From: Tubulanus polymorphus | Lineage: Eukaryota > Animalia > Nemertea | Assembly: GCF_964204645.1 (NCBI RefSeq) | Contig: NC_134031.1 | Location: forward strand, 12,030,088 to 12,094,087 | Direction of reading: 5' to 3' | DNA length: 64,000 nucleotides | Shown here: piece after piece, positions 13,882 to 37,800 of the stretch | Numbering within the stretch: position 1 is the first letter of the stretch | Layout: the number at the start of each line of letters is the position of its first letter | Program-made: the position numbers and the translations under genes | The notes under the pieces: model-generated | What the model saw: the letters and a program-made list of their open reading frames with translations, nothing else | What the model was told of the DNA's origin: nothing | The model's database searches: none

Positions 13882-13946
13882 CTGAAAACATACTATTAAC
13901 GGGGTTTGTGGGCTCAAACCCAATTGTGTGGTGCTATTTTAATACC

Positions 13947-14118
13947 CGTTTCTGGGGCATATATGTATAATTATATGCTAATGATATGCAAACCTCACAA
14001 TTTATATAGGCCTATATGCCCCATGAATTATATACGTTTCTGGGGCATATATGTATAATTATATGCTAATGATATGCAAACCTCACAATTTATATAGGCC
14101 TATATGCCCCATGAATTA
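13947..14118. repeat. 88-bp tandem duplication in the left subterminal region
   Basis: cgtttctggggcatatatg...tatatgccccatgaatta occurs twice (13947 and 14035); each copy holds an inverted GGGGCATATA / TATATGCCCC pair. Confidence 0.9.
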
Positions 14119-15631
14119 AATACATGCACCTATACATGTAACATAACTGAAACTATGCCCTTCGTGTGGAATACCTGAGGCCAAACGCTTAGACATTACT
14201 AAACAGCGAATTATCTCACTGCCTATTCTATTGTAAGCGACCGGGCAACAGTCGGTTCTAACAGGTCTGGGTCGATTCATAACAATTGCGATAGGCTTTC
14301 CTACAGAGCTTCGTCCAAGTAAGGTATACAACTTCCATATTTCTCCTTGCTTTGTCGGAATATTCTCTACTCTTCACTTCTATTCACATTTTTGAAATAT
14401 GGCTCTAATTGAGGGAATGAAAGTCCTTTCAAAGCTTTCAATATCCAGATACATCTGACAACAGAAACAAAACAAAATTTTCAATGAAAATTGGAAATCT
14501 CTTTATTAGGAAAAAAGCATTAGCAAATTTACAAACTCTACAAGATAATTCTGATATATTTATCAACCCTAGAATTGTAAACCACGAGGAAGTTGGATAT
14601 TCTGCCAATGGAATATTTTAATATTATTCATGTCATACATTCAAAATACAGTCGATACCTTCTGACTCAAATCATTTAGGACCAGTGATTTTCGTTATTT
14701 CAGTTAGGCGATAATTCAAGTTCCAATATGGAAATTCATGCTATGTTTCATAAGAATTGTGTAAAGATTAGCTGACCTGGAACTCGATGCGTTTACTATC
14801 CCAAATCAAATATGTTATACCGGTAGTCATTGGATTGTATGATATTTTGTCAACTGCAGATAAAACAGAAACTAATCACATTTTTTAATCATTATGTTCT
14901 CAACCTGAAATCAATGGCCTACAACAAATATACCTGATAGGAATGAGATTAGTCTACAAAAATACACCATTTACTTATGTTCACATCATTAAAAAAAAAA
15001 CCTTCTCCACATTTTCTCCTGTAATCTAGTTCATTACATTTCTATAACAGGTGTAAGACTGGCATGAGGGAAATTCTAACATTTATTCAGATCGGTCATT
15101 TTTCATTTACTGCTTTAACAATTTATATACCGGTAATATATTTGATTTTGTTTAAACATTTTCTTCTAAACAGTAATCATTGCGCTTTAATAAAAGGAGA
15201 AATCGATCAGAACAAAAACAAGCAATCATTGAAAGAAAACTCCACATACGGAATATCAATATATAGATATTATTTACATTGGGCACAGTGCTTAGTGGCA
15301 AAAACAAAGTTTCACATATCTTTAATTAGGACCATGGGTCCAGTACGACCAAATGAGTAAATTTTAGTTTTGAGCGAAAAAATGTATTTTTCTCGGATTT
15401 ACGATCGCTATCTTGGTGCATTATATATGCATGTCCAACTTTCTCCAAAACTCACTCGCATGGCAAAACAATCAATACTATGTTCTATATGTACGTTCTT
15501 GCTACAGCTAAACAATAACGTAATTATTACAAAACATAAATAAAGTGAATTTGACGCATCGATTGACGCGTCAAAAATGCTATTTTAATTTTGACAGTAT
15601 ATTTACGCCATACATTTAGAGGTTCCCTATA

Positions 15632-36000: not shown

Positions 36001-36135
36001 AAAACTATTCATATCTGGACACTACCTAGTCACAGAGTTATTATAATATTCATGTCCCCCAATTATGCATTCATTTAAGTGGCATATAAAATCAATTATA
36101 TCAAGACACTACGTAATCATGACGTGATTTTACTA
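33055..36135 (+). repeat. 91-bp minisatellite array with a homogeneous core (~33590-34370) and diverged flanks
   Basis: gtcctacaattctac...atgaagtgattttactatttatatat recurs at 33630, 33721, 33812, 33903, 33994, 34085, 34176 and 34267. Confidence 0.95.
35019..35469 (+). mobile_element. Short Penelope-like insertion: ~125-bp inverted repeats with hammerhead-like cores
   Basis: Arms ~35020-35150 and ~35310-35442 are reverse complements. 13-bp duplication taatattatttat at 35006 and 35470. CTGAAGA-stem-GAAAACGTT followed by AATAAA. Confidence 0.6.
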
Positions 36136-37800
36136 CAGTCAATCTTGGTGTTTGCCTATCACTCAGGACTCGGCTTTTTAGTATAGATTAGGTGATGTAC
36201 GGATACAAGATAACCCATAGTTCTACTAATGAATTATCAACCATATAAACTGATTTAAGTGCATAACCAGTACAATAGCCGGTTTACAGATGTTTAGATT
36301 GTCTACGTAAACTCTTGAACTTAAACTACTATCACACTTGAAAGCAATACGAAATACCAGCCATCATTAAATGGAGAAGCTTTAGACTTAGACATTGAGC
36401 GATTACTTCTAAGTTACTCATATTTCCCACTGACCTCAATTACTAAATTAGTTGTTAATATTCTTTTCACTACAGATGTAGGTCTACGTTCCCGACAACT
36501 GATACGGGTTACATACATAGTCTAACATAGAAATGGAGAATGGGTCTACGAATTATTGAGTACAAATTAGACACACAGGGAATGGAAGCAATATATTGTA
36601 AGAACAAGCACTTATAATGATAAAGCGGGGATGGCATAGCCGAGGTTGACTGTATTCTATTTGTTCCCTGGTACTAACTACAGATAAGGAAAAAACCTTC
36701 CTATCTGAATACTGCCTGATAACAAAATGATTTTCATGATTATGCAATATGGCCTACAATTCTATTAAGCATATCAAGCGTATTTGTTTGTATCATTAAA
36801 TATCCCATAAATGGTTTCTGACAATGACAACTACTTTTGAGTTTATCAAGTCGGCAAACCATGGTTTTGATGATTTCAAAATATCAATGCAATACATACT
36901 TCGGACAATAAACAGTAATGATACACTTGTATTGATCTAATCAAAGAATGAAGTCCATCTCTATTCGATTTACATAAAAAAGAATTCCTTCAATGCAGTG
37001 TATGTAAAACGAATAAAGAATCGACGGTTAAGTTCAAAGCACGTGCTGGTCGTTTTAAGGCATGTACCTCTAAAGCAGAGTACATAATGGTACCCTTCGT
37101 CCATTTAAAAAAGTTGAAATATACTGCATTTGGCCTATGGATAAATGTCTCCAATGATGTTACATGTAAAAAGGACATGCAAGATCGGCAAACTAATAAA
37201 GAAAGCTTACCTTTTTCCTTTTTGGCTAGGCTTAGACTCAATGTTCTCGCATCACCGCGAATAGTAACTGGACATGCGCATTGACCTATCGGTCGGGTTC
37301 ATTGTTTGCTGTAGGAGATGAACCCTACCGAACCTCGAAGCAAAGGATTATTTTAATTGCCCAATGAATTTCATATGAACAATGTGTTGAGAACACGCGT
37401 TTTTGGAAAAAAATATATCTTAATGTTCTTGAAGATTCTTGCAGTTTGTAAGTGTAAATCATATACACACTACACAGCCGTACACCCTGCTCTGCTCTGT
37501 ATGGGCTCTCCCGAACTTCCGGAGTTCTGCCAGGTGATGGTTTCTCCTAACTTCTGACGTAGAAAAAGGGGCGGAGCTTATCTGTTCTAACCGTCAGATG
37601 GGGCTGCTGTATTGCTTTATATATAAATATCTTTGTCAGACCCGATTACGCCTACGACTGCAAGTGGGTGATTGAACAATTTTCTGAGCGTTTGCAAGGT
37701 GTAACAATTACGGGACACTTTGTATGCCCCGTAATTTTTCACCACCCCGCAACAAGGAAATTAAAAAGACAAACGCCCCGTTAATCGTACATTATCTTAG

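Follow-up and report, generated by a model that had tools for sequence, protein, structure and literature searches.

Within the window analyzed here, a 64,000-nucleotide stretch of the Tubulanus polymorphus genome, an earlier note had described a 24-kb tyrosine-recombinase transposon encoding SET, OTU, recombinase and Myb-like domains in one protein. The locus poses two questions: whether this DNA is a mobile element, and whether its domains are made as a single protein.

Element boundaries, copies and target

Five copies of the element (Table 1), 99.5–99.8% identical, were found on five chromosomes; there were 3–9 mismatches per 8.9 kb. The ends at 13882 and 37800 were fixed to a single base, because a second copy had both ends in common and different flanks. 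All five 3′ junctions and both 5′ junctions in the copy comparison lay in (TA)n. The copy under study sits in an intron of a CCDC50-like gene, antisense to that gene.

No RT, DDE or HUH ORFs were found inside the element, nor was the combination of reverse transcriptase and RNase H that defines DIRS/Ngaro retrotransposons; an Rfam search gave no match. The mobility enzyme was a tyrosine recombinase alone, with its catalytic residues intact, and the gene contained spliceosomal introns, which fits transposition at the DNA level. The 24-kb tyrosine-recombinase transposon is borne out by copies that are near-identical, dispersed and bounded by fixed ends in (TA)n. The element is almost certainly a transposon with TA targeting; it is complete and was very recently active.

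Inverted ends were present as claimed, with an exact core of 10 bp, but were short and imperfect; the arm match was equaled by 12 of 5000 random 40-bp window pairs. An extra GGGGCATA was located near the 5′ arm (37730-37723), and the 88-bp subterminal repeats, with their GGGGCATA pairs, are candidate arm-type binding sites. A Lineus relative had a 3′ end with a similar terminal motif followed by TA. The c-Myb consensus TAACGG was found within both terminal cores; a canonical Myb site is not claimed because the Lineus end lacks TAACGG.

Table 1. Features of the element and its flanks (window positions).
Feature	Position	Strand	Remarks
(TA)n target tract, 3′ end of element	13658..13881		
Whole element, Tubulanus polymorphus	13882..37800	gene on −	23,919 bp
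3′ terminal arm	13882..13909	+	exact core ATTAACGGGG at 13895-13904
Subterminal 2 × 88-bp repeat	13947..14123		inverted GGGGCATA pair in each unit
Last exon	15632..15840	−	Myb/SANT-like domain, stop
Acidic linker exon	15985..16122	−	
Recombinase exon, GH and nucleophile Tyr	16234..16429	−	His 16378-16376; Tyr 16351-16349
Recombinase exon, STKLR box	17318..17447	−	Arg codon 17344-17342
Recombinase exon, catalytic Lys	18116..18253	−	Lys codon 18228-18226
Large exon	18341..20549	−	OTU (Cys 20313-20311, His 19905-19903), acidic/NLS-like linker, zinc fingers, core-binding domain, catalytic Arg (18459-18457)
Three small acidic linker exons	21724..22670	−	22670-22608, 22306-22253, 21795-21724
Degenerate repeat exon	22747..22798	−	stop in long frame; left out of RefSeq models
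Tandem exon-intron array	23510..25513	−	12 × (66-nt exon + 96-nt intron), diverged 60-nt last exon
Exon A0, 72 nt	25608..25679	−	alternative acceptor at 25659
Predicted 31-nt frame-switch micro-exon	27241..27271	−	phase 0 to 1; skipped in RNA contig
SET exon 3	28024..28216	−	RLIND and ELRYDYG motifs; phase 0 at end
SET exon 2	28405..28546	−	phase 1 to 2
Host repeats nested in SET1-SET2 intron	28612..30583		very high read depth; occur outside element too
SET exon 1	30728..30835	−	ATG at 30830; phase 1 at end
91-bp intronic satellite	33013..36135		opposite orientation at 23022-23410 and 16753-17054
141-bp palindrome	35017-35445		
Putative promoter and 5′ UTR exon	37211..37630	−	strong donor at 37210
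5′ terminal arm	37770..37800	−	inverted 10-bp core ATTAACGGGG at 37785-37776
(TA)n target tract, 5′ end of element	37801..37873		

Splicing and reading frame

Only X3 was spliced; X1 and X4 behaved like proximity-ligation DNA and X2 like long-read DNA. The spliced RNA contig X3/19 (686 + 72 + 23 = 781 nt; bin depth 8.95, i.e., 72 × 24.5/197) extended past the SET exons into the repeat array, with ~243 nt 5′ of SET exon 1 having no mapped place. SET exon 3 was joined directly to A0, and SET ended at residue 149 because A0 must be entered in phase 1 and the end of SET exon 3 is in phase 0. Entered in phase 0, A0 supplies the stop codon of the 149-aa SET protein; in phase 1 it is open. RefSeq P0190 uses the same direct join and has the C-terminus WWRQIMY. 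In the observed splice form, SET is a 149-aa protein off the common transcript. In this RNA, which leads from SET into the array, SET is out of frame with the remainder.

Codon counts across the exons showed the frame to be open between the exon at 25679 and the stop at 15632. This portion of the single stop-free frame of ~1530 aa stood, and the SET join did not. The array encodes a 22-aa, Ser/Asp-rich repeat and comprises 11–16 units in the other copies. In the phase-1 frame of A0, the T-S-K of the repeat was kept despite three synonymous codon changes, and A0 has therefore been translated in phase 1.

Four splice choices and no others gave an open frame. Frames of 1533, 1516 and 1541 aa were obtained with the 31-nt micro-exon included, via the alternative acceptor at 25659 and via a weak alternative donor, respectively. 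Skipping SET exons 2-3 gave 1411 aa without SET, in frame and with strong known splice sites. A strict search for an adaptor exon between SET exon 3 and A0 found none; a relaxed search yielded the 31-nt candidate. This micro-exon carries the sole consensus-strength donor of the 2.2-kb intron and was identical in five of five copies; its acceptor is weak, and the chance expectation of one strong donor in 2.2 kb is ~20% (0.10 per kb). Another candidate exon near 27830 was rejected (in-frame stop, no RNA depth). No RNA reads for the micro-exon or the skip form were found in the single spliced contig. A fused SET-OTU-recombinase-Myb protein is possible, and production of a SET-containing fusion in some tissue is given slightly less than an even chance.

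Protein domains

Single exons or database proteins (P0012, P0014 and P0190), and no self-joined spliced protein, served as queries in the domain searches. The SET, OTU and zinc-finger assignments held up against Pfam, PDB/Foldseek and the motifs of 78 relatives. SET was matched by Pfam (E 8e-7), and its top PDB match was KMT5A (E 8e-13). The GxG motif and both active-site tyrosines were kept and the NHS motif reads NDG; Asp stands for the His of this motif family-wide, so SET activity and substrate are putative. Judged by sequence, the domain is KMT5A/PR-Set7-like, of a predicted H4K20 type. A SET of this type would point to replication licensing or repair at least as well as to evading silencing.

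The OTU domain scored above the Pfam cut-off, resembled A20/Cezanne in Foldseek (E 2e-6) and contained the Cys-His dyad, and is predicted to be deubiquitinase-like. The closest OTU relatives found were domains fused to Mutator-type (MULE) transposases. CCHH and CCHC zinc-finger motifs were invariant or almost so across the 78 relatives.

The full recombinase motif set was confirmed: R888, K936, R1008, H1034 and Y1043 (P0014 numbering), in an AF2 model of pLDDT 91 with XerH, Tn1549 Int and Cre as the top folds. In the STKLR box, Thr takes the place of the usual His family-wide. Pfam assigned the recombinase to Phage_integrase alone, with no DUF3504, GCR1_C or DUF3435 match. The proposed Myb/SANT-like tail was seen as a weak Pfam match (E 0.0055), but it fell below the cut-off.

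Family distribution and cargo slot

The plan SET-repeat array-recombinase was found in fish, frogs, a sea cucumber and a bivalve (3,396 recombinase clusters). SET-plus-recombinase proteins among animal genes, mentioned in the earlier note, belong to a very large animal family; its extent, the prior OTU-bearing transposons and the OTU relatives in Mutator-type transposases had been missed. SET and recombinase are fused in frame in many fish and frog relatives (RefSeq models). A fish relative contained the same three SET exons followed by an in-frame tandem exon array of 25–37 units, and Tegillarca had SET exons, repeat exons and recombinase in that order. In the flanks covered, the ends of the fish element could not be placed. 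SET was present in 14 of 42 long relatives, and some Atlas recombinase clusters had SET in 92–99% of their members. Recombinase relatives were also present in the cnidarian Clytia.

Other cargo in the same slot included tandem BRCT, a Dbf4-like ORF (BRCT and zf-DBF) and an ATF7IP-binding domain. OTU is swappable cargo in this family, whose architecture is SET, tandem exon array/cargo slot, zinc fingers, recombinase and Myb.

Alternative arrangements of the gene

A two-gene element is a serious contender, if rather less than evenly probable. SET would always be a free 149-aa protein. OTU-recombinase-Myb would come from an internal promoter, from translation restarting at the Met that precedes OTU or from the form lacking SET exons 2-3, which keeps the frame and uses strong known sites. 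RefSeq annotates the SET and recombinase parts separately. Consistent with this arrangement, the Lineus recombinase ORF is intronless with its own ATG, and in metagenome contig L011 a SET exon, a Dbf4-like ORF and OTU-recombinase were called separately. However, the SET transcript runs into the repeat exons, the candidate micro-exon is conserved and the vertebrate family plan is fused.

The vertebrate fusions (fish and frog RefSeq models) instead favor a constitutive single 1530-aa SET-OTU-recombinase-Myb protein, in which the chromatin writer and the eraser would protect the element from silencing. Frames of 1533 aa (micro-exon) or 1516 aa (acceptor 25659) are open, and minor isoforms get lost from assembled contigs; yet the sole RNA contig and RefSeq agree on the out-of-frame join, and H4K20me1 is no simple anti-silencing mark. 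This arrangement is improbable.

Slightly less probable still is a decaying lineage, in which recent frame loss disabled the recombinase of an ancestral fusion and another family member moves these copies in trans, with SET and OTU as passengers. Decay would agree with a premature stop that precedes over 20 exon junctions and with frame-breaking changes in the large exon of two of the five copies (P0015/P0017, P0016/P0012). However, the junction is common to all five copies, A0 shows synonymous conservation, and three copies retain the catalytic residues and the OTU dyad together with 990 intact codons downstream. Many introns, the 24-kb size and RefSeq gene models might suggest a domesticated host gene or segmental duplication, but on all five chromosomes identity breaks off at one and the same base, in every case at (TA)n, and the flanks beyond are unrelated, which makes this extremely improbable, and a domesticated single-copy locus is refuted because five near-identical copies are dispersed.

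We consider it probable, on the whole, that the locus is an autonomous, recently active, (TA)n-specific CryptonV-like tyrosine-recombinase DNA transposon of a widespread animal family. Counting against this reading, no SET was found within 10 kb upstream of the Lineus ORF, and the recombinase of the copy under study has a private substitution, R886Q, at a position occupied by Arg or Lys in 77 of 78 alignment rows.

Proposed mechanism

The recombinase would bind the two imperfect inverted arms, with Myb and zinc fingers as arm-binding domains, and would cleave inside the flanking TA run. The excised circle, with an arm-(TA)k-arm junction, would then integrate into another (TA)n tract. No conventional target duplication would be expected because the (TA)n tract always provides the short overlap homology required by tyrosine recombinases. 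We regard this circle mechanism as likely. A circle intermediate has been demonstrated for Starships (10.64898/2026.09.21.753150) and proposed for Cryptons (PMC3212892).

The recombinase frame may be accessible only by minor or tissue-specific splicing, which would either include the micro-exon and yield the 1533-aa SET-OTU-recombinase-Myb protein, or leave out SET exons 2-3 and yield the 1411-aa form. The P-element splice switch is a parallel for a splicing-gated recombinase.

The KMT5A-like SET would methylate H4K20 on element chromatin, and OTU would shield the protein or the recombination site against ubiquitin-dependent removal. The preferred purpose of the cargo would be to license replication of the donor or circle, or to let either gain copies through repair, over plain anti-silencing. 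PR-Set7 tethering favors pre-RC assembly, and PR-Set7 stabilization leads to re-replication (PMC10968542). A replication-licensing role is nonetheless a tentative and rather unlikely proposal. More doubtful again is the full combination: an undescribed animal-wide lineage of giant recombinase transposons (24 to >55 kb) in which a PR-Set7-like H4K20 methyltransferase and swappable OTU/BRCT/Dbf4-like modules would license circle/donor replication and hence copy gain, with the micro-exon gating the recombinase.

Comparison with known systems

The Crypton-like identity of the recombinase was supported. CryptonV is the closest named group, matched by the description of its target habit and not by sequences; animal DNA transposons, a tyrosine recombinase and microsatellite-specific insertion are shared (Kapitonov and Jurka 2012, Repbase Reports 12:2034, cited in PMC8869645). 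The CryptonV literature covered does not mention SET, OTU or sizes of 24–60 kb, and no description of SET plus recombinase together in a transposon was found in the literature. CryptonA/F/I/S are likewise tyrosine-recombinase DNA transposons with introns (PMC3212892), but have no inverted ends and 4–6 bp direct repeats (Kojima and Jurka 2011, PMC3212892), whereas the element has imperfect inverted arms, any direct repeat being indistinguishable from the TA tract, and contains SET, OTU and Myb with no DUF3504 or GCR1_C match. Some oomycete Cryptons have DNA-binding tails of the HTH or GCR1_C type as well as a C48/Ulp1 cysteine protease (PMC3212892).

Large size, recombinase mobilization, asymmetric inverted ends, target preference and accessory content are shared with fungal Starships. 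The element, however, has animal hosts and no DUF3435 match, its recombinase is last whereas the Starship captain is first, and its accessory domains are encoded by exons within a single transcript instead of by separate cargo genes. Transposon-borne OTU proteases are shared with Ginger1, Helitron/Helentron (PMC2836005, PMC6431247) and Mutator; those OTU-bearing elements have DDE or HUH enzymes and no SET, in contrast to the tyrosine recombinase and SET found here. Unlike KMT5A/SETD8/PR-Set7, the SET here travels in an active multi-copy element and has ND at the NHS motif. In SETMAR a SET is joined to a transposase, but this host gene arose by domestication and its transposase part is a mariner DDE domain, whereas the element SET sits in mobile multi-copy DNA. 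Endogenous nimaviruses also have zinc-finger tyrosine recombinases targeting simple repeats (PMC10871703), but are viral genomes of hundreds of kb; the element has no viral genes.

To date, there is no experimental demonstration of Crypton transposition (PMC13565253). With copies that are near-identical and apparently intact, ends known to the base and a target that is both strict and abundant, the element makes the mechanism testable, as well as how a cut-and-paste circle increases copy number. If the reading is true, a histone methyltransferase in an active transposon would be an unusual means by which selfish DNA alters the chromatin of its host, and hundreds of gene models annotated as "uncharacterised" or "KMT5A-like" in fish, frogs and invertebrates would be transposon parts. 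A recombinase moving 24–60 kb into (TA)n would be a candidate large-cargo integration tool.

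Copies, ends and target

The element is a real, recently active transposon. The window sequence was a 100% match to OZ123232.1 and was compared with four further Tubulanus polymorphus copies, each from a different other chromosome. These copies were 99.5-99.8% identical to the window copy across the 20 kb in common, and in the coding half mismatches numbered 3-9 per 8.9 kb. In all five copies, identity stopped at the counterpart of base 13882, beyond which came (TA)n and then unrelated flank; the opposite end, reached in one of the four further copies, began at the counterpart of base 37800 and was likewise preceded by (TA)n. 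Since these end bases are shared by copies with differing flanks, the element is exactly 13882-37800, as the earlier note had placed it. The inverted ends that it described were also found, as imperfect arms with an exact 10-bp core occurring only twice in the window; 12 of 5000 random control pairs scored equally well. The end of a multi-copy relative in Lineus longissimus had a similar motif, then TA. Three of the five copies were intronic and antisense to the host gene. Copy L005 was 24.6 kb long, and copies L004 and L005 carried frame-breaking changes within the large exon.

Encoded domains

The SET, OTU, zinc finger and recombinase assignments of the earlier note held (Pfam, folds, residues); its Myb-like tail was only a weak Pfam match, recurring in Lineus. 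The SET domain matched above the Pfam cut-off, with KMT5A/SETD8 as the closest solved relative (E 8e-13). It retained both active-site tyrosines and had ND in place of NHS, as did every aligned family member. The OTU domain also exceeded the Pfam cut-off (predicted model pTM 0.80, closest in fold to A20 and Cezanne) and contained both Cys and His; its nearest sequence relatives were attached to Mutator-type transposases. Among 78 relatives, the CCHH and CCHC zinc finger ligands were invariant or almost so. The recombinase matched Phage_integrase above cut-off, and its model (pLDDT 91) gave XerH, XerA, Tn1549 Int and Cre as the top fold matches. Between 76 and 78 of the 78 rows kept residues R888, K936, R1008, H1034 and Y1043 (numbering of database protein P0014); Thr stood in place of the HxxR His. 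R886Q, adjoining the catalytic Arg, occurred in the window copy only.

Reading frame and splicing

All exons were bounded by AG/GT. Given phase-1 entry, the frame was open from the 72-nt exon A0 through 12 tandem 66-nt exons to a stop at 15632, whereas the end of SET exon 3 is in phase 0. Spliced RNA came from one public run, as a 781-nt contig (depth 24.5) in which SET exons 2 and 3 run as far as record position 686. The depth of bin 25544-25740 was 8.95, which equals 72 x 24.5/197 exactly. The lengths 686+72+23 add up to 781, where the final 23 nt are what remains in a 31-mer graph before the path merges with the repeat exons. Bins between SET exon 3 and A0 had none of that contig's depth. 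Together, this arithmetic and the empty bins indicate that the transcript joins SET exon 3 straight to A0 and from there runs on into the array. The RNA mapping proposed in the earlier note went against its exon model as a constitutive form: the sole spliced contig uses an out-of-frame join, with a stop at residue 149. The RefSeq SET model P0190 has the same ending, and the two are probably not independent of each other.

Four in-frame routes were identified, with sites identical in all five copies: a 31-nt micro-exon (1533 aa), an acceptor 20 nt inside A0 (1516 aa), a weak donor (1541 aa), and skipping of SET exons 2-3 (1411 aa, without SET). The predicted micro-exon, which would restore the single ~1530-aa frame claimed previously, has the sole consensus donor in its intron and is preceded by an 80-nt AG-free stretch. 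In phase 1, A0 keeps the repeat's Thr-Ser-Lys despite three synonymous changes, which favors the micro-exon or skip routes. Contigs omit minor forms, so this evidence is compatible with either presence or absence of a SET-recombinase fusion.

Family and architecture

Recombinase relatives numbered 3,396 at the 50% cluster level and came from fish, frogs, echinoderms, molluscs, nemerteans and one hydrozoan. SET was present, mostly N-terminally, in 14 of 42 representatives of at least 900 aa, and in 92% and 99% of two Atlas clusters (52 and 482 members, respectively). In the fish Brachyhypopomus, two copies spanning 42-56 kb had these same three SET exons, followed by an in-frame array (25-37 tandem exon units) and finally by the recombinase; Tegillarca had the same order. 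This SET-to-recombinase exon-intron array is a family trait; its unit sequences are unrelated between hosts, its copy number varies (11-16 in T. polymorphus), and its product is an acidic or Ser-rich linker of variable length.

On a quick tree without an outgroup, OTU was confined to two widely separated branches, P0014 and the metagenome protein P0098, a distribution compatible with either gain or loss of OTU. The same slot was occupied in other members by an ATF7IP-binding domain, tandem BRCT, or an ORF combining a Dbf4-like BRCT with zf-DBF; some of these arrangements may be gene-model fusions.

Comparison with known elements and proposed mechanism

CryptonV (PMC8869645) is the only named group combining a recombinase with microsatellite targeting. 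The element works like CryptonV, to which it may also belong by sequence; it falls outside CryptonA/F/I/S by their end structure and outside Starships by their captain. OTU domains in transposons were already known (PMC2836005, PMC6431247). No description of SET and recombinase in one transposon was found in the literature searched; Repbase may have one. The present additions are RNA evidence against a fusion made constitutively, candidates for the frame switch, and a conserved order of SET exons, array, cargo and recombinase.

The analysis established how many copies there are, where the element ends, what it targets, that its enzyme motifs are intact, and one form of splicing; the mechanism beyond that is a proposal. 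Excision would yield a circle in which the inverted arms meet at the junction, flanking a TA overlap; the circle could then integrate into any (TA)n tract, a sequence that always matches this overlap. These steps are modelled on the known chemistry of tyrosine recombinases and on the scheme put forward for Cryptons (PMC3212892); a circle intermediate has been shown for Starships (10.64898/2026.09.21.753150). Recombinase output would be gated by splicing. For the SET/OTU cargo we favor, as speculation of low probability, a role in replication or repair, on the basis of PR-Set7 effects and of relatives whose cargo is BRCT or Dbf4-like. When tethered, PR-Set7 promotes pre-RC assembly; it is destroyed by CRL4-Cdt2, and stabilizing it causes re-replication (PMC10968542). 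PR-Set7-type activity would let a conservative recombinase element gain copies, and OTU would have something to protect. Alternatively, the cargo may counter silencing, as first suggested.

Coordinates of features in the window and in related loci
Feature	Location	Remark
Exon A0	window 25679-25608	
Candidate micro-exon	window 27271-27241	
Array unit, 162 bp	window 23510-25513; L005	T. polymorphus
Array unit, 1158 bp	L009/L010 14600-56400	fish
Array unit, ~380-bp exon pairs	L012 26100-30300	Tegillarca
Array unit, 519 bp	L008 5800-6970	Lineus
Dbf4-like ORF (BRCT plus zf-DBF)	L011 3869-5470	10-kb metagenome contig; between SET exon and OTU-recombinase ORF
ATF7IP-binding domain or tandem BRCT 5' of recombinase	P0112 (Megalops), P0020/P0106 (Saccostrea), P0052 (Anneissia)	possibly captured cargo or gene-model fusions
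Tandem 2.47-kb units separated by (TA)n tracts	L009/L010 1-8300	upstream of fish SET gene; may be a further TA-targeting element stacked within
Mutator-like gene and small opposite-strand ORF	L008 1844-5569	just upstream of Lineus copy
Three amino-acid changes private to window copy	window 18464, 19124, 15783	include R886Q
141-bp palindrome within 91-bp satellite	window 35017-35445	copy L003/L006 lacks 35140-35444
154-bp high-copy host repeat	window 44737-45337; 28612-30583	flank; nested in first SET intron
gag, protease and integrase fragments	window 56027-59527 (-)	resemble a decayed BEL/Pao LTR retrotransposon, by motif only
318-aa ORF resembling DNA-transposase fragment	window 6582-7538 (-)	no Pfam match
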